Assembly: GCA_977017575.1 (NCBI GenBank)
Contig: CDRNVI010000043.1
Location: forward strand, 186,001-250,000
DNA length: 64,000 nt
Source of the DNA: Paramoeba atlantica
Taxonomy: Eukaryota > Protista > Discosea
Direction of reading: 5' to 3'
Every line of letters begins with the position of its first letter. Positions within the stretch are counted from its first letter, which is position 1. Below, piece after piece: positions 6,091 to 47,553 of the stretch. Both the position numbers and the translations under genes were made by a program. The notes under the pieces were generated by a model. The model was not told the origin of the DNA and made no database searches. It saw only the letters and a program-made list of their open reading frames with translations.

Positions 6091-7000
6091 TAATTTTCTT
6101 TTTTAGGCTCTTCGTTAAACGCGGTGGTTGCTTTCAACTTAGAAGTCACTCATGCTGCGCGCTTCGCGTTGAAAACTACCGCCGCGTTTAACGAAGAGCC
6201 TAAAAAAGAAAATTTGTCCTGGAAAACGGAAAGATTATAGCCAAAAATAGCCGAATTTCGGGTAAAAATGGGGTGATTTTCGCGTATTTTTGCTCTCAGA
6301 GCACTAAATCCGACATTTGCGCGTGGGAAATCACTCGCAGGCATGAACGAAAGCCTACCGAACGTATTGGGTAGAGAATGCGACTCCAACCATACCATTC
6401 TTTCGACACAAAAATGCCCCTTTAGGTCCGAAAAATACTTTTTCACCTTTTTTAGTCAAAATTGGGTCATTTTGAGGGGCGCACCACGGTTCGAAGAAGT
6501 GATACCTTGCGAAAACAACTGCGGAGAAAGCTAGTGTAGGTCCCAAACTATCAAAATACAATAGGGGAAACGATTTTGGAAAAATATTTTTTTTGTCATT
6601 TTTTTCGCCAAGTTGAAATTTTTTTCAAAAAATTTTTTCCGAAAAAATCCGAACTTGGCGGACCCGTCCTGCGCATACGCGGGGGGGTCACCCCCGGGTA
6701 GGGGGGTGGAAAATGCGCGCCAAGACCCCGGCTACCCTTTCTGCGGTTTTTTTTCGAAAACTAATTTTTTCGAAAAAATTTGCTCGACCATGCCCCCCCC
6801 CCCCTGGACCCCCCCCCTGGACCCCCCCATGGACCCCCCATTTTTTTCAAATTTTTTTTTCAGTTTTGGACCACCGGAGCCCCCTTTTATATTTTTTTCT
6901 TCTATTATATTACTGTGTTCCTCTTTATATTTTCACTGTTTTTGTTCACTTTTTTTTCAATAATCGAGTGTAGAGCGGTAGTTTTACAACCACCGCAATA
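6091..7000 (+). repeat. ~900-bp dispersed repeat, copy A
   Basis: Near-identical to 8453-9341; begins with a 95-bp TA-flanked hairpin (6106-6200). Confidence 0.9.
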
Positions 7001-7140: not shown

Positions 7141-7297
7141 TGAGCCCCGCGTCACCAATAAGTGACCCCCCTTATTTTTTGCATAGGGGGTCGTGGGGGG
7201 GTTATCATGCCACGTTGTCGTTCAAAATTTTGAGATCTGTACGTTCCCGCTGTTTTTAGCTCATTTTAAGACTTTAAATTTCAGTAAAAAATAGTAT

Positions 7298-8096
7298 TTG
7301 ATTTTTCAACCTTTTTTTCCAAAAATGCCAAAATCACCATATCGACTCCCAAGAGGGGTGCTTACTTCTAGTGGAAAGGTTCTTTTAAAGATGAGGCACG
7401 GACAAGGAGTACCAATAAAAAAGCTAGCCCGTGATTTCAACGTTTCTAGAAGGATAGTTAAAATATATTTGAACGCAAAAAAGCTACCCCAGTATACACT
7501 TTGAGTCCTGAGCGAAACAAAATAATGAAAACTCGTAAAACGAGAATTAAGATAATAACCCCTCTCGACCCTGCTGGAGTACCGAGATTCAATTCATCAA
7601 GGCGCATAACAGCCCAATTGAAGAAAAAGAATATACAAGTTTCAAAAAGAACAGTACAGAGAGACTTATCATCCCTGGATTACAGATATGCCGCCCGGCC
7701 GCTATGCCAAGGGCTTACCGAACACGACAAAAAGGAAAAAGAGTTCAATTTGCGTTGAATTACAATATGGATACTGCCCGTGTCATCTTTACGGACGAAA
7801 AAATATTTGATACGAATGATAGCAGAAGAAAAATGTGGGTAAGGCGCGGTCAAAAAGCAGCCCCGCGTCAAAAAGTACGTTGGGCACCAAGATGCCAAGT
7901 TTGGGGTGCTGTAGGGGTGGGGTGGAGGTACTTGGTAATTCTACAAAATGACACATCTATTACAAGTGAGACGTACATAGAAACATTAAAAGAGGTAGAT
8001 TTCCCCCCTAATCGTATTTTTCAGCAAGATAGGGCAACGGCACACACTTTCGATGAGTACTCATCCAAACTACCATTACAATGCGATCTGCGGTAG
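7298..8096 (+). pseudogene. Tc1/mariner (IS630-Tc1) transposase, split over three frames and truncated before the catalytic E
   Basis: HTH IKKLARDFNVSRRIV; second HTH SSRRITAQL...VSKRTVQR; VIFTDEKIF, WGAVG, FQQDRATAH. Confidence 0.85.
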
Positions 8097-8137
8097 TTTG
8101 GATGAGTACTTTCATTTTCGTCGGAGGGCGGTAATAG

Positions 8138-9674
8138 TACTGTACCCCCACCCCTAGTTATCTGTCGCTACTTTTCGAGAAAAGGTGACAGATAACTAGG
8201 GGTGGGGTAGGGGTGCGACAGATAACTAGGGGTGGGGTAGGGGTGCGACAGATAACTAGAGGGGTCAAAGTGCGACAGATAACTAGGGGGGTCCGTCGCC
8301 AAAAAAAGCGAGGGAACGAAATGTAACAGAAACAGCATCTTTATTGCCTAGGAAGATTCCTTTCTACCCCGATGGGGTACTATAAGCTGAAGACATGCGT
8401 CTACGGGTTAAAAGAAGCCCAGAGAGTAATTCACACATTTTATTGGGTTAAAATAATTTTCTTTTTTAGGCTCTTCATTAAACGCGGTGGTTGTTTTCAA
8501 CTTAGAAGTCACTCATGCTGCGCGCTTCGCGTTGAAAACTACCGCCGCGTTTAACGAAGAGCCTAAAAAAGAAAATTTAGCCTGGAAAACGGAAAGATTA
8601 TAGCCCAAAATAGCCGAATTTCGGGTAAAAATGGGGTGATTTTGGCGTAATTTTGCTCTCAGAGCACTAAATCCGACATTTGCGCGTGGGAAATCACTCG
8701 TAGGCATGAATGAAAGCCTACGGAACGTATTGGGTAGAGAATGCGACTCCAACCATACCATTCTTTCGACACAAAAATGCCCCTTTAGGTCCGAAAAATA
8801 CTTTTTCACCTTTTTTAGTCAAAAATGGGTCATTTTGAGGGGCGCACCACGGTTAGAAGAAGGGATACCTTGCGAAAGCAACTGCGGAGAAAGCTAGTGT
8901 AGGTCCCAAACTATCAAAATACAACAGGGGAAACGATTTTGGAAAAATATTTTTTTTGCCATTTTTTTCGCCAAGTTGAATTTTTTTTCAAAATTTTTTT
9001 TCCGAAAAAATCCGAACTAGGCAGACCCGTCCTGCGGATACGCGGGGGGGTCACCCCCGGGTAGGGGGGTGGAAAATGAGCGCCAAGACCCCGGCTACCC
9101 TTTCTGCGGTTTTTTTTCGAAAACTAATTTTTTCGAAAAAATTTGCTCGACCATGACCCCCCCCCTGGACCCCCCATTTTTATCAATTTTTTTTTTCAGT
9201 TTTGGACCACCGGAGCCCCCTTTTATATTTTTTTCTTCTATTATATTACTGTGTTCCTCTTTATATTTTCACTGTTTTTGTTCACTTTTTTTTCAATAAT
9301 CGAGTAGTTTTACAACCGGTAGTTTTACAACCACCGCAATAATTATGTTGCATCCATGGGTTAAAGTAAAACATCGGGAGCTATTGGACTCCAATCACAT
9401 GATGGAGGGGATACCGAAGCGGACGATGATGGGGATGATGAAAGGGATGATGATCCAATTTTCCGATTTTGACCGTAGAACGCCACGCAAAACCATTAGC
9501 CTAAAAGCAGAACAGAAAAAAATTAAACTTTCGCTTCTATTTTTATAAATTTTTCATTTTGTTTAGAAAGGCGACAGATAACTAGGTCGACGAAAAAAAA
9601 ATGTTCGAAAGGCTGAAAAGCGACAGATAACTAGGGGGGTGGGGGGGTGACAGATAACTAGGGGGGGTACAGTA
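8138..9674. mobile_element. TA-flanked TIR element carrying repeat copy B
   Basis: TA-ctgtacccccacccctagttatctgtc ... gacagataactagggggggtacag-TA; multiple subterminal gacagataactagggg repeats. Confidence 0.75.
8453..9341 (+). repeat. ~900-bp dispersed repeat, copy B
   Basis: Direct repeat of 6091-7000. Confidence 0.9.
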
Positions 9675-9714
9675 GTTTGGATGAGTACTCATCGAAACTA
9701 CCACAATCCCAAAA

Positions 9715-10167
9715 ATTCAACTTGGCGAAAAAACTGGTAAACACAATATTTTTTTAAAATCGTTTCCCCTGTTGTATTTTGATAGTTTGGGACCTACATT
9801 AGCTTTCTGCGCCGTTGTTTTCACAAGGTACCCCTTCTTGGAGCCGTGCTGTGCCTAGAAAAATGACCCATTTTTGACTAAAAGCAAAATAGCATTATCT
9901 ACCCAATACGTTCGATAGGCTTTCATTCATGCCTACGAGTGATTTCTCACACGCAAATATCAGATTTAGTGCTCTGAGAGCAAAAATACCCTGAAATGAC
10001 CCCATTTTTACCCGAAAATCGGCTACTTTTGGCTATAATCTTTCCGTTTTCTTCAGCTTTCCAGACCAAATTTTCTTTTTTAGGCTCTTCGTTAAACGCG
10101 GTGGTCAACGCGAAGCGCGCAGCATGAGTGACTTCTAAGTTGAAAACAACCACCACGTTTAACGAAG
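9715..10167 (-). repeat. Dispersed repeat, partial inverted copy C
   Basis: Reverse complement of the first half of copies A/B (e.g. aatcgtttcccctgttgtattttgatagtttgggacctaca). Confidence 0.85.
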
Positions 10168-10397
10168 AGTCTAAAATTATCCAATAGTACTGAGCCATAG
10201 TATTGAGCCATAGAGCCTAAAAATATATTTATAAGTTTACTTCATTCACCACGAAGCGCGCAGCATTACCTTTATCATCGGACATTAACCGTCTCCTGTA
10301 ATAAAGCTCTAGACAAAAAATAACCTCAAATAAATTCTTCCGTAAATACATCCTTCTCTGACAAAATTCTCATAATGCGATGAATCGTGAATATGCT

Positions 10398-10844
10398 TCA
10401 AGAAAACTGAGCCTGAAAATTGGCATTTCGTTCCAGAAGTCGCTTCTTCTTCGTTGATACTTTCGAATGGTTATGTGCTGTTGATGTACTCTTCTTTTCT
10501 GTAGAAGATTGTGTACAATGTGTATTATCCTTGTTGTCTACATATCTTCGCCTTTGGGCGTGAAGGTTGCCTTCCCCAGTTGCACAAGAAACACAAAAAT
10601 CTCGGACTCGACACTCGGCTCCACACTGAGTACATTGATTTTTTCCTGCTGATGTGCGTGCTTCTAACTCCGCGTAGATGTCATAGGAGCAACAGTGTCC
10701 CATACGAATTTTTTGTTTGTGCCTTACGTTCTTGCGAGTCGATTTTTCGTGAGGTGGAAGAGATACTTGGAGTGGGCGTTGTGACACGATGGTTGTATTT
10801 CGTTGAAGACGACGCTTTCTGCGCTTTTGAGTTTTGGAAGCCAT
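10398..10844 (-). CDS. Possible small basic protein with CxxC...CxxC
   Basis: KRRKRR and CTQCGAECRVRDFCVSC; no family recognised. Confidence 0.25.
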   Translation of the reverse strand: MASKTQKRRKRRLQRNTTIVSQRPLQVSLPPHEKSTRKNVRHKQKIRMGHCCSYDIYAELEARTSAGKNQCTQCGAECRVRDFCVSCATGEGNLHAQRRRYVDNKDNTHCTQSSTEKKSTSTAHNHSKVSTKKKRLLERNANFQAQFS

Positions 10845-11104
10845 GAAGTTTTTAAATCTCTAGGTAAAGGTTCTCTTTCTAGCATAATACACGAAGTAAA
10901 AGACGTCATGAACAAAAGCATTTTTTGAAAGAAAAGAGGAAAAGCAATTCGCATTTACGACATGCGCAAAGCGCTTGTTGTTGCTTTTTGCCTCTTGACA
11001 CTGTACTTTAGATCAGTAAACATTAGATTCCCGGGGCTTCAAGTCACGTACTGGTCCACCAAATATTTCTTGCTAGCTTTTTCAACGTGATACAAATTGA
11101 GGGC

Positions 11105-11235
11105 GGCCGGACAGGACCGATGCCTTTGGACAGATAAAATGCCTCTGGAGAGACAAAATGCCTCTGGACAGATAAAATGCCTTTGGACAGATAAAATGCC
11201 TTTGGACAAATAAAGTGCCCTCGGACAGGAAAATA
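11105..11235. repeat. Minisatellite, ~20-bp unit
   Basis: (aaatgcctYtggacagata)n. Confidence 0.85.
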
Positions 11236-11344
11236 GCCTCCCATCCATTAACCTTCCTCGCCATATTCATCAGTGGTGGAGCTCCTCCGCACGGGTAAAT
11301 TAGGTCACACAGCTTTCATCTTCTCTGTGAGCTCACCCGCGCTG

Positions 11345-12410
11345 CTTGTCCGCGTTCCACAATCCTAGACATAGATTCTCAGTGCGCGACCCGCGCGCTG
11401 GAGCTTTGCCTCCAGAAGTGGGCTTTGCTCACGGTTGGGCCTTGCTCGCAAAAGAGGGCTTTTGCCTCCAGAAGTGGGCTTCGCTCACAGTTGGGCCTTG
11501 CCTCTGGCCAATCCTGCGGAAGGGGTAGACATAGGTTCTCAGTGCGCGACCCCGGAGGGCGCGGGTCGCCAAAAGATATAATTCTGTCCCAGCGCTAGGC
11601 ACCTGCACCCTTATCTGTCATAGAAACTCACACCCTTATCTGTCATAAATGCACCCTTATCTGTCATAAATGCACCCTTATCTGTCATAAATGCACCCTT
11701 ATCTGTCATAAATGCACCCTTATCGGTCATAATGCACCCATATCTGTCATAATGCACCCTTATCTGTCATAAATGCATATATATATGCATATCGCTATAA
11801 TGCATATCGCTCACGCGACCCCCGCTAAATAGGGGGGGAAGGTGGTAGTTGTGGGGTATGGAGGCCTCTCGCAACTCCGGGTCCTCACCGGGAGCAAAGG
11901 TGAATTTATTGGTCTCCCCAACTTGACACTATGCGCAGCATTCGCCAGTTTCTGTCGCAGACGTGTAAACAAGGTCTGGTCCATTGGCCCGGCCGGCCCC
12001 TCCGTGCGTTCGGCCTCTCATATTCCCCAAAACAACTACCACCTTCCCCCCATTTATCAGGGGTCGCTCGCGCGACCCCCGCTAAATAGGGGGGGAAGGT
12101 GGTAGTTGTGGGGTATGGAGGCCTCTCGCAACTCCAGGGCCTCACCGGGAGCACAATTGAGGTTACCTATTTTCGCTCACGGTTGGGCCTTGTTCGCAAA
12201 TGGGGGCTTTTGCCCCTAGAAGTGGGCTTCGCTCACAGTTCGGCCTTGGCTCTGGACAATCCTGCGGAAGGGGTAGACATAGGTTCTCAGTGCGCGACCC
12301 CAGAGCGCGCGGGTCGCCCAAAAATATAATTCTGTCCCAGGGCTACACTCCCAATTGGGCCTTGCTCGCAAACGGGGGCTTTTGCCTCCAGAAGTGGGCT
12401 ATGTTGACAG
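11345..12410. repeat. Composite repeat block (three related ~200-bp units plus two ~90-bp duplicates)
   Basis: Recurrent tagacatagRttctcagtgcgcgaccc and gggcttttgcctccagaagtgggc; duplicated cgcgacccccgctaaatagggggggaaggtggtagttgtgggg at ~11813 and ~12071. Confidence 0.8.
11604..11776. repeat. Minisatellite, 20-21-bp unit
   Basis: (tgcacccttatctgtcataaa)n. Confidence 0.9.
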
Positions 12411-12685
12411 TTGACATTTCCCAATAATATATTTATCTAAATGTAGCCCCGGCACTGCCATCTGTGCGGATGGTACTAACACCGACCTTTTTTATTAGTG
12501 GCATTCTATCTGTCCATTGGCATTTTATCTGTCCATTAGTCATTTTATTTGTCCAGGGACATTTGACGTGTAAAGTGGCCCAAATTAAGATGCAGAAGAA
12601 AACATGACATACATTTTCCGTTTTTGACAAGACGACTTCGGCATCATTTTACGCGAATTACGCGCTTGCCATACGACAAGCAATA

Positions 12686-13357
12686 TCAATTATTGAGCGC
12701 GATCCTCTTTGGTTCATCCTCTGGGTAGGCTTCAGATGTGTACAGAGGGGACGAAAACGGCTCATAGTCTTTATAACACTGAGGAAAAACTTTCTCTACA
12801 GCTCTCTCCGCTACTCCACGACAGTTGGGGTTCTGTGATACGGAAAGAGTGGCACGTCGCTGGACACATCGCATTCCGGCGCCTATTGGGCTGTGGTGCC
12901 CACGTCCCCACTCCGCGTTCCACAGACATTCCCCGCTGAGCCGAGAGGCACGGACTTCCGAGCAGGCATGATGGAGACAATTGGACGGGTCGACCTCTGC
13001 CCTTGCGTCGTCGTAAGCATGTATCATTTCATGCAGGAGAAGCCGATGCAGTTCATTTTCTCCCCCTCTTACTGTATTTTGGTGTAGAATAATTTGCCCC
13101 TTTGCTCCATTTGGAGTATTTTTCCAAAGATAGCCTCCTTCTACGGCATGAGAAGCTGTGTTTTCGGCGAAAGGGAGATGAACCATGCTTGTTCTAGGGA
13201 ACTCTTTATGCGCGTTCTTGCTATCTACACATTTGATCATTCTGAAGTCAAAAGGCTCTTCTGTTAGAGTTTCAATCGCGCGTGCTACGTAGCGAATAGT
13301 ATTTACCGAATGAAGTGCTTTTTGGACACCTTTTTCGCAATCTGTGTGAAGCATCAC
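12686..13357 (-). CDS. ATP23: Mitochondrial inner membrane protease ATP23 (peptidase M76)
   Basis: LLHEMIHAYDDAR zinc motif, HHACSEVRASRLSGEC, CVQRRATLSV, C-terminal VFPQCYKDYEPF. Confidence 0.93.
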   Translation of the reverse strand: MMLHTDCEKGVQKALHSVNTIRYVARAIETLTEEPFDFRMIKCVDSKNAHKEFPRTSMVHLPFAENTASHAVEGGYLWKNTPNGAKGQIILHQNTVRGGENELHRLLLHEMIHAYDDARAEVDPSNCLHHACSEVRASRLSGECLWNAEWGRGHHSPIGAGMRCVQRRATLSVSQNPNCRGVAERAVEKVFPQCYKDYEPFSSPLYTSEAYPEDEPKRIALNN

Positions 13358-36662: not shown

Positions 36663-36783
36663 TGAGAGTGTTGCCAATCCCTGGTCAGTAATCGGCCCAG
36701 GGACATAGCAACTCCCCATTATCTCGGGCGTAGTAAACACGCCTTGGCTTGCCTGGCACTGAGATCAGCCATTGGAAAAAAAA
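36663..36783 (-). repeat. 3' terminal segment A of the YR element
   Basis: 121 bp, reverse complement of 42258-42378 with a single mismatch. Confidence 0.95.
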
Positions 36784-37338
36784 CGCATTTTTTTCGTTAG
36801 AGGCCTCCTTTCTCAGCCCAGGGGCTTCCCACTTAAGGGGCCCGTTCCCACAACCAAGTGATCTCCCCGGCAACACGATTTCATTCGTGCGTCAAGAAGG
36901 CTGGGCTATGGGACCAGGGAGCTCTAGAACAAGTGCAGCAACTTGTGAGCCTAATTCGACATGAAATGATAGTGGGATTAAATTAGTTCATAGTAAAACT
37001 AAATTATACATTGCATGTACTGAAAACATAAAAAAGGAAAAATAACACGCGCATAGCTTATTATGCGATCTTAAAAGATTTTGTGTTTCAAAATATTTAC
37101 ATGGTCATAAACAAAAACCCAGTAAAAGCAAATTACCTGTAAATTTTAGATTCTCCATTTTCTTATTTTGTCGAATCATTCGACTCGAATGCTGACGGGG
37201 TTCCTACTCTCACTCTGTGCGTGGACCTTTGACGAGTTGGCTACGGATTTTCCGTAACTGGAGCAATAGAGATGAAAATACTGGTTCATTTTTTTAGTGT
37301 AGTCCATTCGCCTTCGCAGCTTCGTTTACTTGTCAATC

Positions 37339-37767
37339 TCAGATTATGATTGGGTCCATATGTGAGAGAGCGATTTCGATTCCTCCGGGCAACAGACCGT
37401 CTTTGACTCGGAATCCGAACTCTTCCCGCGTTAGGCCGTCTGCTGGATTCTCCTTAGATTTGAGATAAAAGATGCGAAACGATAGCCCAGTCTTTCTCCT
37501 TTCTTCGATGTCTAGGAGCTGCTGACAAATTGAATGTCGAACTGATGTGCGCTTTTGGAGTGCCCGCACAACGTCCATATTATCGCATCCTAGAATCACA
37601 TGGGGAGCAAGTTTCCACCCTGTGATTAAGGCGGCTTTTGCCGCAGAGAACTCAGCATCGTATATCTCCCGATACAAGTATTGGAATACTTTCTTGCAGC
37701 AAAATTTCTCCCGATTGACGGAGTACGCATAAACCAGTGTGGGTCGAAGATGCGTCCGAAAAAGCAA
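37339..37767 (-). CDS. RNase H C-terminal part of the YR element pol (out of frame with RT)
   Basis: IYDAEFSAA, LGCDNMDVV, SKENPADGLTR: DIRS-type RNase H E/D/D motifs. Confidence 0.85.
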   Translation of the reverse strand: MLFRTHLRPTLVYAYSVNREKFCCKKVFQYLYREIYDAEFSAAKAALITGWKLAPHVILGCDNMDVVRALQKRTSVRHSICQQLLDIEERRKTGLSFRIFYLKSKENPADGLTREEFGFRVKDGLLPGGIEIALSHMDPIII

Positions 37768-39094
37768 GAACGAGATGGGATATTGGAATTGGCGGTAATG
37801 CGCAACTTCTCTTGTTACTCAATATACGCACTACATGCATGCTCAAGAGCTTTAAGTCTTCGCTCTTCAATTTGTAAAAGCTTTCTTCGGATTGGTGCGA
37901 TATCTCTTTCGCGATCATTCGAACATCATAGACTGAAGCAAAGGAGGATTGGGTGACCATTGTATCCCACATGATCACACCTATCACCCTCTTTATGTCT
38001 CGCACGGTCGTAGGTGACACGGTTTCTAGTACTCTCCAACGAGCAATGTTAGATTCAGCGTGTTTCCAAAATAATTTGTCTATTTCCCAAGAGAACTCTA
38101 TTCCTAAAAATAGGGCTTGATCACATGGGCCGTCGATATATTTCCATTCGACGTTGCAACCCGTTGGCAGTCTCTTCATGCTTTTCATGAGTTGCGATCT
38201 TAACTGACTTAAAAAACCTTCGTTGCTAGATATGACCAACACATTGTCAATCCAAACAAATACTGCACCTTGTTTTGCTTTTGTCTTCTTATTTATCGCC
38301 CACGCGAATGCCGGAGGTGATTCAGATGTGTCTCGGACAGGTAACATCTCATGACCTGTAGGACAAGCCGCTAAAACAATTATCCATGCCAGACATTGGG
38401 CAAGATAAGGAGCCCAAGAGAACCCCATTGGGAGAACTCGCAACTCGAAAGTCTTGTCCTCGCATTTTATTGAGAATATGCGACCCAAGCCTGATGGGAT
38501 TCGTATTTGATGAAAGAAATGACGAATGTCCGCAATCAAGAATTTTCCACCTGGAAAGCATGATAAGATGTGTGTGACTTCTGCGAGAGCTGGAAAGTTT
38601 AGGCTAGGGGGAGTAGCGCATCTATCGTTTATAGGGGTGCCATCTACGATGCTCCGAGATGAAATTTCATCTTTTGGCACTTCAAAGTATCGGAAATAAA
38701 GGCGAGAATCATTACGAAAATCCTGAACTCTGCGCAGTACTTCATACGAACAAAGCTCAGCTAAGTGATCACGCCATTTTGCTTCAGAATGTACCCCAAG
38801 TTTCCCACGAAAGCCTTCGAATTCCGTGAAAAGACGAAATGAGTGTTCATCAGTGAGTATGGTAAGGCACTTTTTTCCCCACGTGTACGTGCTTCGAGAT
38901 GCAATAGCGCATAGAGTATCGATATGAAGACGACCTGCAACCGAAATGGGATCAAGGGCCCGTTGCTTTAGCGTACAGGACTTTTGGAGGACTGCACCAT
39001 ATGCCGTTCCATATGCTAGGTTGTCCGCGGGTTCGTTCACTAATACTATATTATATCCCAACGTCAAAAGACGAATAAACCTACGTTTATTCAT
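37652..39094 (-). CDS. Reverse transcriptase plus RNase H N-terminus (DIRS/VIPER-type)
   Basis: LIADIRHFFHQI, LPMGFSWAP, VWIDNVLV, FLGIEF, AFSDASSTHTG. Confidence 0.92.
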   Translation of the reverse strand: MNKRRFIRLLTLGYNIVLVNEPADNLAYGTAYGAVLQKSCTLKQRALDPISVAGRLHIDTLCAIASRSTYTWGKKCLTILTDEHSFRLFTEFEGFRGKLGVHSEAKWRDHLAELCSYEVLRRVQDFRNDSRLYFRYFEVPKDEISSRSIVDGTPINDRCATPPSLNFPALAEVTHILSCFPGGKFLIADIRHFFHQIRIPSGLGRIFSIKCEDKTFELRVLPMGFSWAPYLAQCLAWIIVLAACPTGHEMLPVRDTSESPPAFAWAINKKTKAKQGAVFVWIDNVLVISSNEGFLSQLRSQLMKSMKRLPTGCNVEWKYIDGPCDQALFLGIEFSWEIDKLFWKHAESNIARWRVLETVSPTTVRDIKRVIGVIMWDTMVTQSSFASVYDVRMIAKEISHQSEESFYKLKSEDLKLLSMHVVRILSNKRSCALPPIPISHLVLAFSDASSTHTGLCVLRQSGEILLQESIPILVSGDIRC

Positions 39095-39438
39095 TAGTAA
39101 TCAAATGGCGGAATGCATAGCTGTGCGCCACATAAGAAATAATCGTTGTACAAGACAAACTTGTACAAGACACGTATGATATCACGTAGAGATTTAGCAC
39201 ATTATTGGAGGAAGGTCTCATAGTTGTAACACTCGATTTGTAACGACTCTCTTTTTTATAGCTTCCAACTTCTTTCACTTAACGTTTCGACTTGAAAACC
39301 AAACTTTTAGTATCTTTAATTTAGTGAAACAAGTCTCCAAGGAACTAGTTTACATGGAACTAACTATATTATGAACTGATTACGCAGAACTAAGGTAGGA
39401 GAAAATCACGCGAGTGGCTTTTTGTTTCTTTCCGTTCT

Positions 39439-40320
39439 CTAATCATGCACTTGAGAATGCGGTGCTAAGTAGTGCTTCTGTCTCACCTGTCTCGACATGC
39501 CCGACAGTGCACTGGACATCATGTCAGCGACGTTTTCTACTATGGCCCCAGTACCACCATGTCTCAGAGTGTGAGTTCCATCAAAAGTCACTCCAGATGG
39601 CCATCCCAGTTCGGTGGATGCTCTTTTTACAAGTTTACTCGTGGATCTTTTCTTGTACGCCGGAAACGCAAGGTCTCCATGTGTTACGTCACGCAGGGCA
39701 TTTCGCACTTCTTCGGTTGCAACATGAGTAAGAGGTTTGCACCTTTGCTTATCAGTTGAGTAACTCTTTGTTTTATCGTGGCGGATGAGAAGATGAGACC
39801 AAGAGCCTTCTACACGCAAATCCCCGCCACGTATCTTCTCCACTTCACAGGATCGAAGAGCAGCGTAGTATTGCACGCGAAAAGCTCTTGCGAGCTGCGG
39901 CCCGTTAGCACGGGGTGTGACCCACCGTACAAGTTCGTGTAACATATTTTCTGATACATAGCCTCTGGGACATTTTTCTTGTCTATGCTGCTCTGCCTCA
40001 ACGGCAGCCCCGTCCACTGCCCGAAGTATGAGGCGGTCGCCTGCCCAGGGGCGTTCACCTGCTTCGAGGTCAAAGCTTTGACATTCCTGATAGAAGAGCA
40101 AGGCACTGCGGTAACCTTGAAAAGTCGATTTGGCGCATCCAACCGATGCGTGATGCCACAAAAAACATCCGAACGCTTCTTTCGTTATTTTTTCGAATCC
40201 TCGGTTCTTGCAAAACTTTCGTAAAGCAGCAAATCGGGCCTCGTACATCCTTCGCGTTCCGGGTGCAATCGACTTTAATGCCAGAGCTGCCAGATACCCT
40301 TCGCAAGAATCTTTCTGCAT
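39439..40320 (-). CDS. Tyrosine recombinase
   Basis: SIAPGTRRMY N-terminus; catalytic R (ALRSCE), K (HDKTK), HxxR (HTLRHGG), Y (KHY). Confidence 0.92.
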   Translation of the reverse strand: MQKDSCEGYLAALALKSIAPGTRRMYEARFAALRKFCKNRGFEKITKEAFGCFLWHHASVGCAKSTFQGYRSALLFYQECQSFDLEAGERPWAGDRLILRAVDGAAVEAEQHRQEKCPRGYVSENMLHELVRWVTPRANGPQLARAFRVQYYAALRSCEVEKIRGGDLRVEGSWSHLLIRHDKTKSYSTDKQRCKPLTHVATEEVRNALRDVTHGDLAFPAYKKRSTSKLVKRASTELGWPSGVTFDGTHTLRHGGTGAIVENVADMMSSALSGMSRQVRQKHYLAPHSQVHD

Positions 40321-40915
40321 CTAAAAGTATGCAAAAATACTCAATGTGTGTGATTACATGGTTTATTTACATATACCGTATGCAATCTCATATCTTCAAC
40401 GGAATGGCCAGTTTAATATATTTAACTTTCCATGTGTAAAATAGCGGATGAAATAACAGACTGCTTTGTTGTAGACACACTTATTCATTCAGTTCATTAT
40501 GTCTTATGGTTTCCCCGATTTTCAAGGAGAAACTGCACCATATTATGACTTACTTTTAATCTGGATGCCACCCATTTGACCCTTTTTGGTATTCCAACAA
40601 ATTGTGCTTAATGATTAGGCACCTACGTACTAGATACACTGTATGTTAATCTGATAGGAATAATTATCACACTTTCCCTCACTATACATGTATTACTTAA
40701 CGTCTAAGTAATGTGCAAAGCCCATTTTCTTTACACAATGTCTATGCTGTATAAAGGCGTCTGTTGTGTGTGAGTGTCACTCGTTGTATGACAAATACGC
40801 ACAATCCTAATGATCTGCACAAGCAAATAATAATATTCGTGCTCTATGTTCAGCCCAAACATGAATCTGATTAAGAAAAACTAAAACATACATCTATTGC
40901 CCCCAAGATCGGCAA

Positions 40916-41959
40916 TTACGGCCCCTTTTCATGTTTATTCTTTCGATCGTTCATTTCCCGAGAAATCTTTTCTGGCCGTTCTTGGCCTTTGACGAAACCT
41001 TCTCGATTAGAACGATAAGATCGAGGGGCATACAAATTTACTGGTCGCGGGCGGTTGAAATAACGCACATCCGGCCCAAATGTTCTTCTGTTGTTTTGGA
41101 CCATGCCTCCCCGTCCATAGCCTGAAGTACTATTTTGGAAGGATTTCGCCTTCAAAAGAGTCTCCGGTATAGTTACGGAGTCGGTCTCTGGGAGCAATCC
41201 GACGTTCTTGCGGCAAAGAAGAAGAGATTCCTCTTTCTTTACGTCGTCAAAATCGGCGCTGAACACAAGAAAATGAGCAGCGAGTTCTAGAAGGAAATGG
41301 TTAGCTGCTATTGATACCGCCTTGTTTTCTTGTGCCGCCTTGGGGGATACACCTTTTCCTGCTTGCGTAAGCATCTCCTTGAAGAAAATAGCGTAGCGGG
41401 TTAGAAGAAAGCTTTCGGCCCATTTTTGAAACTTCGGGTTGTGCACTGCCTCCCACAGTTGCTCTCCAAGGTGAGGACGATTCTCCGTGCCTGTCCATAC
41501 GGTAAGTTGCCCGTCCTCCTTTTCTCCTTCCCGTGCTTTCATTTTCTTTGGCTCCTTCGGGGGGTCCAGCATGAGGGAAACCAAAATTCCTCGATGTTCT
41601 TCGTTTCCAATCAAATTCTCGAATCCGGAGACGTCCTGTGTTCGGCGGACACCCAAAAGTTTGGCTGTAAAACTTGCTTTTTCACTGAGGGTTTCTCCCC
41701 TTAATACCTTTTCAACGAAATCCATGATTGCACTTGCGCATTCGTCTTCGCTGATTTCCGCCATAAATTTGACAAGGAGATTCACATCGACTGCGCGCTC
41801 AAAACGTAGAGAAATTTTTATGCTCGTTTTCGTCGAGCATGCCTGGTCGACTACGCTATCGACGTTTGCGTCAAAGTGGTGAGTGTGGCCGACTATAGGA
41901 ACTGAGCGGCTTTGTGAAGCTTGGGGTGAGGTAGCTACGGAGGGTCGTTTCTTCGGCAT
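40916..41959 (-). CDS. Gag-like ORF1 of the YR element (assigned by position)
   Basis: 347-aa ORF first in element order, with basic R/G/P-rich C-terminus; no zinc knuckle seen. Confidence 0.6.
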   Translation of the reverse strand: MPKKRPSVATSPQASQSRSVPIVGHTHHFDANVDSVVDQACSTKTSIKISLRFERAVDVNLLVKFMAEISEDECASAIMDFVEKVLRGETLSEKASFTAKLLGVRRTQDVSGFENLIGNEEHRGILVSLMLDPPKEPKKMKAREGEKEDGQLTVWTGTENRPHLGEQLWEAVHNPKFQKWAESFLLTRYAIFFKEMLTQAGKGVSPKAAQENKAVSIAANHFLLELAAHFLVFSADFDDVKKEESLLLCRKNVGLLPETDSVTIPETLLKAKSFQNSTSGYGRGGMVQNNRRTFGPDVRYFNRPRPVNLYAPRSYRSNREGFVKGQERPEKISREMNDRKNKHEKGP

Positions 41960-42257
41960 AAGAAATAAAATTTAGAGCAAGTTCCTACGCATGTTTTAAT
42001 AGATTAGATACGGTTGTGACTTATCCTGGTCATCTTTGCTCTCTCATTCTATATTCACCCTTTCTGTATTTCCACCCTCACGCTCGCCAGAATATGGATA
42101 CTTGCTGACTGCTTTATGTCAGCATATTCCTGTTTCTCTCTGTTTTCTCTCTCGCTCTTTTTCCTTACTACTTCAAGCAATCGGCGAAACTAATGTATTC
42201 ATCTATACATACGCCTTCTGTATTTTTTTTTCTGCTTTCTATTCTTTCGTCTTTCTT

Positions 42258-42421
42258 TTTTTTTTCCAATGGCTGATCTCAGTGCCAGGCAAGCCAAGGC
42301 GTGTTTACTACGCCCGAGATAATGGGGAGTTGCTATGTCCCTGGGCCGATTACTGACCAGGGATTGGCAACACCCTCATTATCACAGGCTTCATAAGCAC
42401 CTTGATACCGGGACCAAGCCC
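42258..42421. other. Internal complementary region (ICR): reverse complement of the joined element ends
   Basis: 42258-42378 mirrors 36663-36783; 42376-42421 mirrors 43872-43918; they overlap on TCA/TGA. Confidence 0.9.
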
Positions 42422-42819
42422 AGTGACAGGCATGCCCATTGGCACCGCAGATCAGTTCCCTCCTCCCCTTCTTGTCATCATTCTAGGTTTTCAAACGTGA
42501 GACAAAACTCTAAGGGGCGTGGAATCTGTTGAGCATCTTTTATTAGATACTTCACACAGATGCGTAGCCGTAAAGGCATTGCATTCGAAATCCGTGGAAT
42601 AATGAACGCAGTGCAAAACTGACCCGACTGCGCAAGTCGTATAAGGTGCGTCACACTGACGAATCCATTTTGTTTTTCTTTCTATCCATTTTTTTTTCTT
42701 TACTTCCAGTACCCTGGAAAGCAACACAGACAGCAGTGGTACTGTGTGATGATCAGCAATATTTGCTTACAATAATCATTAAATTTACGACTACGAGAAG
42801 CCAATCCTCAATGATCACT

Positions 42820-43488
42820 CGAAGTGAAGTGCCAACCGTCAGTCCCGAAGGACTTCGAGGCAAAGTATAACCACCAACCGTCAGTTCCGAAGAACCCCGA
42901 GGTGAAGTGCCAACCGTCAGTCCCGAAGGACCTCGAGGCAAAGTATAACCACCAACCGTCAATTCCGAAGAACCTCGAGGTGAAGTGCCAACCGTCAGTC
43001 CCGAAGGACCTCGAGGCGAAGTATAACCACCAACCGTCAATTCCGAAGAACCTCGAGGTGAAGTGCCAACCGTCAGTCCCGAAGGACCTCGAGGCAAAGT
43101 ATAACCACCAACGGTCAGTTCCGAAGAACCTCGAGGTGAAGTGCCAACCGTCAGTCCCGAAGGACCTCGAGGCAAAGTAAAACCACCAACCGTCAGTTCC
43201 GAAGAACCTCGAGGTGAAGTGCCAACCGTCAGTCCCGAAGGACCTCGAGGCAAAGTAAAACCACCAACCGTCAGTTCCGAAGAACCTCGAGGTGAAGTGC
43301 CAACCGTCAGTGCCGAAGGACCTCGAGGCAAAGTAAAACCACCAACCGTCAGTTCCGAAGAACCTCGAGGTGAAGTGCCAACCGTCAGTCCCGAAGGACC
43401 TCGAGGCAAAGTGTAACCACCAACCGTCAGTTCCGAAGAACCTCAAGGTGAAGTGCCAACCGTCAGTCCCGAAAGACCTCGAGGCAAA
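42820..43488. repeat. 78-bp tandem repeat, ~8.5 copies, inside the YR element leader
   Basis: gaagtgccaaccgtcagtcccgaaggacctcgaggcaaagtaWaaccaccaaccgtcagttccgaagaacctcgaggt. Confidence 0.95.
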
Positions 43489-43832
43489 TAATAAATTGTT
43501 ATTATAATAATAATAATCGTCGACCGTGAGTCACAAATTTCCTCGAAGTAGTTCATTTTGGCGCCGAACGGTATGTTTTCCCCGGTCAGGGCCAAAACGA
43601 ACCGGAATAAAATCACTAATTTAGTGCCAGGCTCGGTTCCACATAGCATGTCAACATGTAAATAAAATTTATATCCTATCTTTGGGTCGGAACCAAGGAT
43701 TATAGTGTGTATATTCAACAAACCTGTATGTTCAAACAAATCAGTATGTTCAACAAACCTGTATGTTTAACAAACGAAGAGATGGACAAATATATTAAAA
43801 AAAAAAGTCGTACCTTATCGTACAATAAAACT

Positions 43833-43905
43833 CTTCACCCTCACACTTCGTCTTGTTAAGAAGACGACGCCGGGCTTGGGACCGGTATCAAGCGTGTTTA
43901 TGAAG
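43833..43905 (-). ncRNA. Twister self-cleaving ribozyme (P1 type, with P5 hairpin)
   Basis: Minus strand: P1 CUUCA, L1 UAA, P2 ACAC, GC, UUGAUA, P4 CCGG, L4 UCCCAAGC, CCGG, P5 UCGUCUU/AAGACGA, P2' GUGU, GAGGG, P1' UGAAG. Confidence 0.93.
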
Positions 43906-44173
43906 CCTGTGATAATGATAGTTTTAAGAAAAAAAACGCACCTTTTGGACCACTCGAGGCACCCCTTCTTCGAAAGCAATTTGAAAACTCGAATTTCCCA
44001 CATACATGCTTTTTTCAACTGGAAGCGTGTGATACGCAAGACCGTAGAGGAAGGAGGAGGCGAAAGGTAAGAAGCAGAAGGCAGAGCCGGTTAATGACGG
44101 GTTATACTGCGCCCAATTATTTTTATTTTGCACAAAGTTGTACGCGAAGAAGTTTATATTATAAACTATTTTA

Positions 44174-44925
44174 TATACACCCATGGACAGAAGTGTGCCC
44201 CCGGCCTGGCAAATGTGAATTTTTTTTACCCGTTTTTTCTCATTTTTGCAGCATTCGAGAGATCTCGTTCCCCTAGCGAAGAGCTTTGCCGCCTTTGCTT
44301 CATAGGGACCCCCTGGTACCCCCTGTTTCCAAAAAACATGGTTTTATTGCCCGTTTTTTGGAACACAGTCAATTTCTCTAGTATATTATCTTTTTTTCTA
44401 CCTGTTTTTTCTTCATGAGGACCCTGCCTCGTATAAATCATAACGAAACATCGTTTTGTCGATTTCGGAGCGAACAGAGATAGTCAAACAGCATAAATCC
44501 ACACAACTTTGTAGTTTTAAGCCACACAACTATGTAACCCTGACAAAGGCCACAGGAAAGGCGTTTAATGCTCTAAAACGTGCCCCACATAGATAGAAGG
44601 TGTTGAATTCCATCAAATCTGTTCCTAAACGTATGCAAATAGTTATTCAGACCAATGGGGAGCATTGCGGATATTGATACTTCTTCCTTTTTTCTCATTT
44701 TCTCATTGAAAGGGTGATTTTTTTTCTAGATGTCTAATGCACCATTTTTTGTTTTTGGTCTACTTCGGGGTCACCACCAGAGCACCAGGGGGTCCCTATG
44801 AAAAAAAGGCGGCAAAGCTCTTCGCTAGGGGAACGAGATCGCTCGAATGCTGCAAAAATGAGAAAAAACGGATAAAAAAATGGCATTTGCCAGACCGGGG
44901 GCACACTTCTGTCCATGGGTGTATA
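44174..44925. mobile_element. MITE with ~150-bp TIRs
   Basis: TA-tacacccatggacagaagtgtgcccccgg...cataggg mirrored at 44785-44925. Confidence 0.85.
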
Positions 44926-47553
44926 TTATATTTCCTCCTTTCTCGTCTTTGTTGTCTATGAAGCCGAAAGAAGTGGAGAAATGCATTGCCCTGTATAAAC
45001 TTTGGTTCAAAAGAACCACGTGGAAGGAACGTCTGCAATCATTACTCCTCTGTCCAAAAATTCGGGCAGTGCCTGCCGAATATAAATGAAAAGGAAAATG
45101 AAAGTGAATTGTTTTATCATGCACTTATAGTGCAGAGATTTACTCACCATGTCCTTATCCCGCATACGACGGGTGGATCATGTGAGGTTTCGTCCTCGCC
45201 GGAGGTGTGCGGGTGCGGAGAGCTGGCGTCCCAGGTGCAGAGAGCTCGGTTGTCATGTGCAGGTGCAGAGAGCCGGATGCGTAATCCCCATATTACAGTT
45301 TCGGGGGCAATCCGGGTGCAGAGAGCTGCGACAGAGCCGAGGTGCGGAGAGCTGGGCGACCGCCAGGTGCAGAGAACCGAGTCTCGTCGGCGGAGGACAC
45401 GTCTAGTGGTCCTCAAGGGAGGCCACCGTGACGCATGGCCCTCTCGGAGAGGAAAAAGACAAGTCGAAAAAAGCCGAGAGGGGGAAGCACACTCACTCCA
45501 GGGGAGTGAGTCGGGGAGGGGTGAAGGGGTGAAAGCGCGTCCCCTGCTTCAGCGACATGAGGGACAGTTCCGACTTTAGTGCCGGCCGGCAACGGGCATA
45601 AAAATACAGTAAGAGCATGCCCGTTGCCGGGGAAAGAAAGGATTAACTAAGGAAAAAGTACCAAGGTACAGAAACTGTATCTTTCGAAAAAGAGGAACAA
45701 TGTGAGCAATATATTTACTATCCCCCTTATTTAATAGGGCTACGTGTCACCCGCCCTTTAATAGGGCTATTTTGTCTGGAAGGCCAAAAATTATTTCTGG
45801 GAAAGTGCCAATAAGTTGTCGAATGCGCCGCGAAGCGGCGTATTTTCTTTTCCGCATCTACCCCAACAACCAAAAGTGTATCAAAAGGGAGTAGGACCCT
45901 GTTTCACAACGATAAAAAAAGCACCGCGAAGCGGCGCCGATTTTTTTTCCATATTATTTTCCATCTCCACCCCCCCCCACTTTATTTGGGCTTTTTGCCC
46001 AAAATCGGAGTCCTATTAAATAGGGGGGGATAGTATATGAAAGAGGCAGAAGAAACAGCAACGGAGGCAGAAGACACAGAGTCATGAAACTTGATCCAAA
46101 GTTTCATGAATATGTGAAGGAATGTGTGAAGTGAGGGGTGGTTTAAGGAGTGTGAATTAAGATGTATGTTGAAGACGGAGTCAAATTTTATTATTTTCAT
46201 AATTATTTGTGACAGAAGTGGAGTCCTAAGGAGGATTTGTGCTCGAAAATCTGGCATAAAAGAAAATTTTGTGATAAAAGATGAAGTTGTGTCTGAAAAA
46301 TGCATGAGCACGTTTTTCTATATACAGTATTGTATTTTTTAGGAATGGGCGCAACATAACCCGTCTGTAGCCGTTAATTCGATAGAGCGGTCTTTCTGTG
46401 GTAAGGTACGGTACTCACATACACCGTACACATGTATGTGCATGAGGACAAAGAGCGGACTGTGATATTGAATGCGTGATGTGTCCACAGCGACGACACT
46501 TGAGATGGAGATAGTGACCCATGCTATCCTTCATGCGTGGATCATTTCCTTCGTGCTTTTGTCTCCAACGAGCGCACACAGGATCATCCGGTGAGCAAAT
46601 TGCGTCCTACCAACAGGTCTGTACACTGGAACTATTTTAAATCGTAAATAATTTAGGAGGGAAGAACCTGTGTGTCTCCGAGTGGCTGAAGTCTTTGCTG
46701 GAGACTGGGGAACGTAATGTTGTTGCACAGCCGCCTTTCTCCCAATGCGTTGTACGCCGCTCGGCGTTCTCTGCAGGACTGCAACTCACCAGTCTCGGGT
46801 GTAATGTCCCGAGAGGAACTTTCCTCGTTTGTGGGAAGTGATGTGCCCCACCGTTTTCGGGAGCGAAGCACAATAGAATAAGGTTTGGTTGAATAAGAAA
46901 ATTAGATTTTCTCTAATAGATACCAAATTTCTCAAATAGAACTAAATAAATGATTTCAAGAGACATGATTCCATTCTACATACGTTTCCATTGTCACATA
47001 ATGTTTTCATTATCACTGGTTAACCATTAATTCATTGGTTAATTAATTAATTGACTATTAGGGTATGATTATCGTACCACTATTGCAGTATTGAAACATT
47101 CTCTCAATAGTACTCCATGTAACTAAACGTGCCGCATTGATGACCACTCTTTCCAACAGAAAATATCAATTTAAGCTCTTTTTTCGCGATCAGTTTAAAA
47201 TATAGTTTAAAATATTTAGAAGAATATCAAATAGAAAGAAGATAAATGATGAATCAGATTGGGGCAAGATATTTTAAGATTTTTCATTTCGCAAGACTTT
47301 TTTGTACTAACCTCTTATGAGAATATAAATACTTATGATGATGGAAATTTCAAACTTCGACTAAACAGGGAATTGTCGACTCTTAAATTATGGAGGATAT
47401 TACTGTAACCAATTAAAACATTTACAAAACAAATACTAATGCTAAACTCTACAAAAATTATATGCTGGGAAACATAGATTGTATTAGACAACAAAACTGT
47501 AGACTTCAATGGTTCGAATTTTAGAAAGAATACATGGGCACTTGTGTTTTCCG

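Follow-up and report, generated by a model that had tools for sequence, protein, structure and literature searches.

The DNA analyzed here, a stretch of 64,000 nucleotides from contig ctg3950l of ENA assembly ERZ24900291 that we call the window, carries its genes on one strand. All 17 of its open reading frames of at least 250 amino acids lie on the minus strand, and an earlier note on this DNA was correct in placing a predicted ribozyme on the same strand as the host genes. An element of 7,256 bp (36663-43918, minus strand) is found between a gene for a DEAH helicase, which lies upstream, and one for glutathione synthetase, which lies just downstream. In the sense direction, the element contains a twister ribozyme motif, four 17-nt units, a 78-nt tandem array, an internal complementary region (ICR), ORF1, a tyrosine recombinase (YR), and a reverse transcriptase (RT) with an RNase H-like domain. 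The element, with its genes in the order ORF1-YR-RT/RNase H, is a DIRS-like or VIPER-like tyrosine-recombinase retroelement. The coordinates of its features are given in Table 1.

Table 1. Features of the retroelement and of its ribozyme motif, in the order of the sense strand. Positions are those of the window.
Feature	Positions	Strand	Remarks
Leader predicted to be cut off, 19 nt	43900..43918	minus	TCA core plus 16 element-specific nt; similarity between copies starts at 43916-43918
Twister ribozyme motif, type P1, without P3, with P5	43833..43905	minus	Rfam RF03160 match and pairings read from the sequence
P5 stem-loop of the twister	43848..43867	minus	7 bp: 43867-43861 with 43854-43848
Four 17-nt units 3' of the ribozyme	43708..43775	minus	Sense strand resembles a spliced leader without its middle
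78-nt tandem array, 8.6 copies, between ribozyme and ICR	42818..43488	minus	Unit = 2 x 39
ICR	42258..42423	plus	Inverted repeats: 121-nt arm (99%) for the 3' end and an arm for the 5' end
ORF1, 347 aa, gag-like by position	40916..41959	minus	No family match
Tyrosine recombinase, 293 aa	39439..40320	minus	Pfam Phage_int_SAM_4 (E 4.7e-4) and Phage_integrase (E 8.4e-3), both weak
Reverse transcriptase and RNase H-like domain	37339..39094	minus	Pfam RVT_1 and RVT_3, both weak
Element 3'-terminal 121 nt, ending ...CTCTCA at 36663	36663..36783	minus	Complementary to the ICR

The enzymes of the element are only distantly related to known proteins. Single-sequence searches of the RT and the YR against solved structures returned nothing, and only a profile search succeeded, for the RT: a profile of 20 RT relatives matches solved reverse transcriptases at E 1e-15. 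The R, the HxxR, and the C-terminal Y can be read in the translation of the recombinase, and relatives of it with 26-33% identity are found upstream of RT in metagenome loci. The RT/RNase H frame of the window copy is broken near 37666 by a deletion of 2 nt relative to two other copies of the element (L003 and L004), and the window copy is therefore not autonomous. Motif C of the RT reads (W/Y)xDN instead of the usual xxDD, and its D and N are invariant in 20/20 aligned relatives (positions 265-266 of P0009; about 38250 in the window RT). Neither inverted terminal repeats of the DIRS-1 type nor split direct repeats of the Ngaro/PAT type were found in the element, which has only terminus-to-ICR repeats. 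The four 17-nt units read ACATACAGGTTTGTTGA in the sense strand and are preceded by a T-run with AGs; they may serve as sites for the recombinase, as decoy targets, or as a region of trans-splice acceptors. The 78-nt array has no exceptional fold (z -1.4).

The earlier note had described a canonical twister ribozyme at the 5' end of the element with every part in place, and the coordinates and pairings of all the parts that it claimed (P1, P2, P4, P5, T1, T2, L4, GAGGG, and the U^A) proved correct. From 43905 to 43833, in the sense direction, the motif begins with the 5' strand of a 5-bp P1 (CUUCA, 43905-43901, with UGAAG, 43837-43833), followed by the U^A-A of the predicted cut site and by the 5' strand of a 4-bp P2 (ACAC, 43897-43894, with GUGU, 43846-43843). 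A GC and a 6-nt linker lead to P4 (CCGG, 43885-43882, with CCGG, 43873-43870), which encloses the loop UCCCAAGC, and P4 is followed by the 7-bp P5 hairpin, AA, P2', GAGGG (43842-43838), and P1'. The cut site that had been predicted between 43900 and 43899 is borne out by the sequence, as U43900, A43899, and A43898 stand between P1 and P2. For the T1 pseudoknot, G43893 and C43892 are complementary to G43875 and C43874, and for T2, the CCC at 43880-43878 is complementary to the GGG at 43840-43838 inside GAGGG. Both pseudoknots can form as far as complementarity goes, and their formation in three dimensions is inferred. The P4/L4 stretch, CCGG UCCCAAGC CCGG (43885-43870), is an exact match to the conserved (uppercase) consensus positions. 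Judged by these pairings, the motif is a complete type P1 twister, with the three-stem core of the rice form and the optional P5 stem.

A check against the Rfam twister-P1 model, which the earlier note had proposed, gave a full-length match under the gathering score. RF03160 aligns to 43904-43834 over model positions 1-68 of 68 with 37.4 bits (E 8.5e-7 with 351 nt searched; E 1.3e-4 with 54 kb searched). The cut-off for twister-P1 is 67.2 bits, and a scan of the whole window with Rfam at the gathering score returned nothing; the match is seen only with E-value thresholds on short stretches. The score stays under the cut-off because the P3 stem is deleted and 18 nt, the P5, are inserted, not because of mismatches in the core. 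In the alignment, P3 is cut down to a single U-A pair, and the other conserved positions match except for one P2 pair, which has a compensating change, and two junction positions, which are affected by the P5 insertion. Thus, the motif shares with the rice Osa-1-4-like core of this class the L4 loop, GAGGG, the UAA cut site, P1, P2, P4, T1, and T2; it differs from RF03160 in its score, in P3, and in the inserted P5, and its activity is only predicted. The exact 16-mer of P4 and L4 occurs once in the window, and 0.12 occurrences with up to three mismatches are expected by chance. The fold of the motif as a single strand is only mildly better than that of shuffled sequences (z -2.0), as expected since the RNA is pseudoknotted. 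The score below the gathering threshold would be in keeping with a mere chance resemblance to a twister. This explanation is hardly credible, given the E value of the local match, which corresponds to about 1e-4 per 54 kb, and given that the motif is found at the same position of the element in several families, with covariation.

The two further copies, L003 and L004, were obtained through the members of the 90%-identity cluster of the RT. They are 97.5-98.7% identical to the window copy over the whole element, and the three copies have common edges at 43916-43918 on the 5' side and at 36663 on the 3' side. Each of the three has lesions of its own. In both further copies a twister lies 16-19 nt from the 5' edge; the one in L003 (325-395) is identical to that of the window, and the one in L004 (4751-4821) has an A instead of U at -1. 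Other loci of the same assembly were reached with YR and RT fragments at 42-63% identity, and a descriptor search combined with a covariance model (R1, built from the window, L004, and L010 motifs) yielded four more twister-like motifs. The Rfam filters missed those in L010, L006, and L008, which were found with the simple descriptor and R1; with R1, the window motif scores 108.9 bits. L010 (9465-9539) contains an intact twister with a different P5 sequence, a G.U in place of an A-U in P1, and a G.U pair in T1. L005 (7690-7758) has a complete 5' half with another P5 sequence, and its GGG and P1' have been lost. L010 and L005 both start with CATTATCAC, and then the 5' strand of P1 follows. L006 (5143-5225) and L008 (5507-5578) represent one more family, which is decayed: L4 is mutated in L006, P4 has a deletion in L008, and P1 is unconvincing. 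Besides the window copy, two further copies and no fewer than three diverged families of the genome have the motif at the same position of the element.

Beyond these families, the motif was not detected. No twister was found in L009 and L011, which are among six degenerate RT or YR fragments of the assembly. The closest intact family, L002 (RT 41% and YR 52% identical), has the same ICR layout (1371-1500 and 6480-6600); the 5' arm of its ICR junction (TTGTGTTTATTGAATGCAG...) contains nothing twister-like, and the true 5' end of L002 is off the contig. A metagenome scan with the 20-sequence RT profile gave 80 loci at 22-38% identity on contigs of 1-10 kb, and at least 6 of the 80 have a YR upstream of the RT. 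The descriptor and R1 found a twister in none of the 80, which is weak evidence because the contigs are short. In the 20 metagenome loci scanned with Rfam, no family reached its gathering score. Like the window copy, every family of the assembly has tandem repeats in the interval from the twister to the ICR, and the units of these arrays are unrelated (window 42818-43488; L010 9700-9960; L006 5210-5300; L008 5570-5660). The units in L006, L008, and L010 are GC-rich and hairpin-like.

Pair counts were made over six distinct sequences of the motif. In these, 96% of the cells are paired, compared to 35-51% with slid partners. Changes on both sides are seen for 7/7 pairs of P5, P2 and P4 are invariant, the changes of T1 in L010 and L006 stay G.U, and T2 is 92% paired. 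None of the shuffles attained the observed covariation. These are few sequences from a single genome, several of them decayed, and their alignment had been fitted to the model. The covariation supports the predicted twister fold and is not strong statistical proof of it. Another possible explanation for the recurrence of the motif is that it is an inherited relic that does not cleave, either left by a ribozyme that is inactive in this lineage or kept as a structure for protein binding or packaging. The decay in L005, L006, and L008, the A at -1 in L004, and the broken RT/RNase H frame of the window copy could all be taken in this sense. Yet the young family A, to which the window copy belongs, and L010 keep all core positions, both pseudoknots, and all helices, and the pairing of P5 persists through a full replacement of its sequence. 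We regard a relic as improbable.

The position of the cut within the element is defined by the edges of the copies. The earlier note had placed the cut 19 nt inside the element, and this distance is correct when it is counted from 43918, the first base common to the three copies. However, these 19 nt include a 3-nt core, TCA, that the element has in common with its target, and without it the distance is 16 nt. TCA (CA in L003) is present at both junctions of the element and in the junction of the ICR and is therefore considered to be the crossover core. The leader that would be cut off recurs exactly, in inverted orientation, at ICR positions 42376-42394.

The ICR is located in the 5' untranslated part of the element, upstream of ORF1. 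On the plus strand, it consists of the 3'-terminal 121 nt of the element (99% match) directly followed by the 5' end of the element. Since the ICR joins copies of the 3' end and the 5' end, it corresponds to a circle junction in reverse complement, like the ICR of DIRS-1. The arm that represents the 5' end begins with 19 exact nt, continues with a near-identical anchor of about 17 nt, and ends in a decayed copy of the twister P4/L4, a match with three mismatches at 42408-42423. The possibility that this inverted, twister-like stretch is a second, antisense ribozyme was rejected, as its L4 and P4 are mutated and there is no GAGGG. An ICR was not found for the L010 copy. At 7196-7236 (minus strand) of L010, 2.2 kb upstream of the twister, part of a twister-like motif is found in inverted orientation (P4/L4 with a single change); it is possibly the ICR remnant of another copy.

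Comparison of the 5' end with the ICR indicates how far the two agree. In family A, they are the same over the 19 nt before the cut and over the first two A's after it. Past the AA, the ICR has a G for an A and lacks one G; similarity then continues for about 17 nt more and decays across P4/L4. Overall, the similarity runs about 36 nt past the cut at lower identity, with the roughly 17 conserved nt within it. The layout is the same in family B (L005 element 7681-13021, ICR 8747-8892), with an exact 17 nt plus AA before the identical mismatch and gap. The A/G mismatch and the 1-nt gap common to families A and B are one inherited event and not two independent ones. The ICR of each family reproduces the two differences between A and B upstream of the cut (one indel and one T/C in P1) as well as one difference in the linker just downstream of the cut. 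Farther downstream, the ICR copies of A and B differ at several positions where the twisters of A and B are identical. In L004, the A at -1 is present in the 5' end, and the ICR of the same copy has kept the T, as expected of a mutation that occurred after insertion. The whole pattern would be expected if each new copy took its first 16-19 nt from the ICR, if the following 17 nt or so needed no more than to anneal to it, and if the remainder of the twister were under selection as RNA.

Two other accounts of this pattern assign no repair to the ICR. The twister might cleave only to free the RNA of the element or to permit its translation, as in R2, L1Tc, and Perere-3, with the ICR being an ordinary DIRS copy of the circle junction and the end of the identity lying near the cut by coincidence. 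An ICR that is exact over both termini is standard for DIRS-1 (PMC7192593); a plain DIRS element without a ribozyme shows the same, which is a point against our own reading, and the mismatch common to A and B counts as a single ancestral event only. We nevertheless consider cleavage without repair to be unlikely, since the similarity of the ICR passes the cut and includes about 17 conserved nt beyond it, of the kind expected of an annealing anchor, and since the ICR reproduces the changes upstream of the cut and drifts in its distal part downstream. The twister could also trim unit-length RNAs from multimeric transcripts of tandem or circular element DNA, in which case nothing would be lost. 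The cut lies merely 16-19 nt past the circle junction, and L004 has a duplicated 3' end with the same spliced-leader (SL) flank (11689 and 12131), both of which would suit such trimming. But the three copies are single insertions flanked by host or SL sequence, and the window contains neither a second ribozyme nor a tandem junction, which makes this account less likely still than a non-cleaving relic.

The sites of insertion provide evidence on the target. The L003 and L004 copies are inserted in the sense orientation within AACGATAAAGATA/CAGTTTCTGTACCTTGTTG (the slash marks the point of insertion), between GATA and CAG. The second half of this sequence matches what we take to be the core conserved among euglenozoan spliced leaders. 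A similar site, ATCA/GTTTATG, harbors the window copy. From these sites, the recombinase appears to aim at an SL-like sequence. The SL-like sequence (...AAGATACAGTTTCTGTACCTTGTTG) recurs in two forms across the loci, with copies in the window (45640-45677, minus), L002 (14013, minus), L003 (15207 and 16250, plus; 9644, minus), L004 (15490, plus), and L006 (3376, minus). In the first form, it is followed by GTAC... and looks like an SL RNA gene; the window copy, which reads from 45677 to 45640, is of this form and precedes the element by 1.75 kb on the same strand. In the second form, it is joined to a repeat, AATTATTT..., as if RNAs bearing the SL had been copied back into DNA. A transcript that enters the element from an SL unit or from the gene cluster would begin with host sequence, which the twister would cut away, with both cleavage and co-transcription being inferred. 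The earlier note had also held that the twister would sever the host polycistron; this is an inference for which there are no cleavage or RNA-end data.

The suggestion of the earlier note that the twister processes the 5' end of the element is supported by four lines of evidence: the same position in copies and families, the covariation of P5, the end of the ICR identity within 2 nt of the cut in two families, and the two sense insertions in SL sequence. Cleavage itself has not been shown. In our judgment, the twister probably frees the RNA of the element from host co-transcripts, and the ICR then serves as the template for the 16-19 nt that are lost. The motif, its position, its recurrence and covariation, the geometry of the ICR, the break of identity at the cut, and the target sites are observed; cleavage, co-transcription, and the cDNA steps are inferred. 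In this scheme, the element, which has no evident promoter of its own, would be transcribed within host RNA, from the one-strand gene cluster here and from an SL unit in the other copies. The twister would fold once it has been made and cut between U43900 and A43899, leaving an element RNA that starts 5'-OH-AAACAC without its first 16-19 nt. The 3' end of the minus-strand cDNA could then be anchored on the ICR by annealing of the roughly 17 near-identical nt that follow the cut. Extension on the ICR would restore the lost letters and run on into the 3'-end sequence, which would produce a circle junction. The recombinase would insert this junction at a short (T)CA core, preferably inside an SL-like sequence. 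The cDNA steps are borrowed by analogy from the model for DIRS-1 (PMC7192593). The twister motif is an integral and recurrent part of this YR retroelement family, and its most likely role, with cleavage inferred, is the definition of the 5' end in combination with repair on the ICR.

Several known systems resemble parts of this arrangement. DIRS-1 of Dictyostelium has a YR, an RT/RNase H, and an ICR complementary to both adjoined termini (Cappello 1985; PMC7192593). Retrotransposition of DIRS-1 was shown to require the ICR, on which incomplete transcripts are believed to be restored to full length (PMC7192593), and in both elements the circle junction has a short core in common with the target. 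In contrast to DIRS-1, the window element has no inverted terminal repeats, its ICR lies upstream of ORF1 and not near the 3' end, its genes are in the order ORF1-YR-RT, and the incomplete 5' end would come from a ribozyme and not from an internal start of transcription. VIPER and TATE of kinetoplastids (PMC6681497) are likewise YR retroelements with the YR upstream of RT/RNase H in a host of the spliced-leader type. No ribozyme is mentioned for VIPER/TATE (PMC6681497), and the window proteins are only distantly related to anything named. The link to VIPER/TATE rests on gene order only, without a phylogenetic placement.

The nearest published case that we found is Perere-3, a non-LTR retrotransposon of Schistosoma with a twister variant at its 5' end (PMC8501958). 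The Perere-3 variants cleave in vivo, and cleavage is sufficient for translation of a downstream reporter (PMC8501958). Perere-3 and the window element have in common a twister-class ribozyme at the 5' end of a retrotransposon, co-transcription from upstream, and an RNA 5' end that is set by cleavage, the latter two being inferred for the window element. Perere-3 differs in being a non-LTR element that uses target-primed reverse transcription, in taking the upstream strand of P1 from target-site duplications, and in having no ICR. The window element, in contrast, is a YR element in which both strands of P1 are element sequence and the piece that is cut off is stored internally.

The earlier note had drawn a comparison with the HDV-like ribozymes of kinetoplastid LINEs, and non-LTR elements offer further parallels. 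R2 and L1Tc carry HDV-like ribozymes, and SLACS, CZAR, and CRE are non-LTR elements specific for SL genes. The logic of these elements is to insert in highly transcribed rDNA or SL genes and to obtain their RNA through a 5' ribozyme or a host promoter. The window element would follow the same logic with a different class of ribozyme, a different integration enzyme, and a different route of replication.

Full-text searches found no paper that joins the twister with DIRS, YR elements, or kinetoplastids; most subscription journals were not covered by these searches, and the novelty is provisional. We lean, by a small measure, towards the complete interpretation, that this is the first self-cleaving ribozyme found in a DIRS-like YR retrotransposon, that the twister sets the 5' end of the RNA, that the ICR rebuilds the piece removed, and that the recombinase targets SL sequence, with the element riding on SL and polycistronic transcription. 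The twister is widespread, and a demonstrated biological role was found in only one published case, that of Perere-3 in Schistosoma. The model for DIRS elements starts from an incomplete transcript that the ICR serves to complete, and both what makes this transcript incomplete and where exactly it ends are not well defined. If our reading is true, a ribozyme fixes the end of a DIRS-type transcript to the nucleotide, and the model of repair on the ICR becomes directly testable; the footprint that it predicts, exact identity up to the cut and then an imperfect anchor, is already in the sequence. YR elements would then join the retroelements that use self-cleaving RNAs, and the arrangement would be a counterpart, among YR elements, of R2, which resides in rDNA and has an HDV-like ribozyme. 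It also suggests how a mobile element copes in a genome without gene-specific promoters.

Two further insertions or repeats were seen in and around the copies. A second RT-encoding element, lying on the other strand, is nested within the L003 copy and interrupts it (L003 5260-9586). Just upstream of the element in the window, at 44168-44931, two inverted repeats, of 97 nt (96%) and 72 nt (83%), are nested with a spacing of 470-620 nt and look MITE-like or foldback-like.
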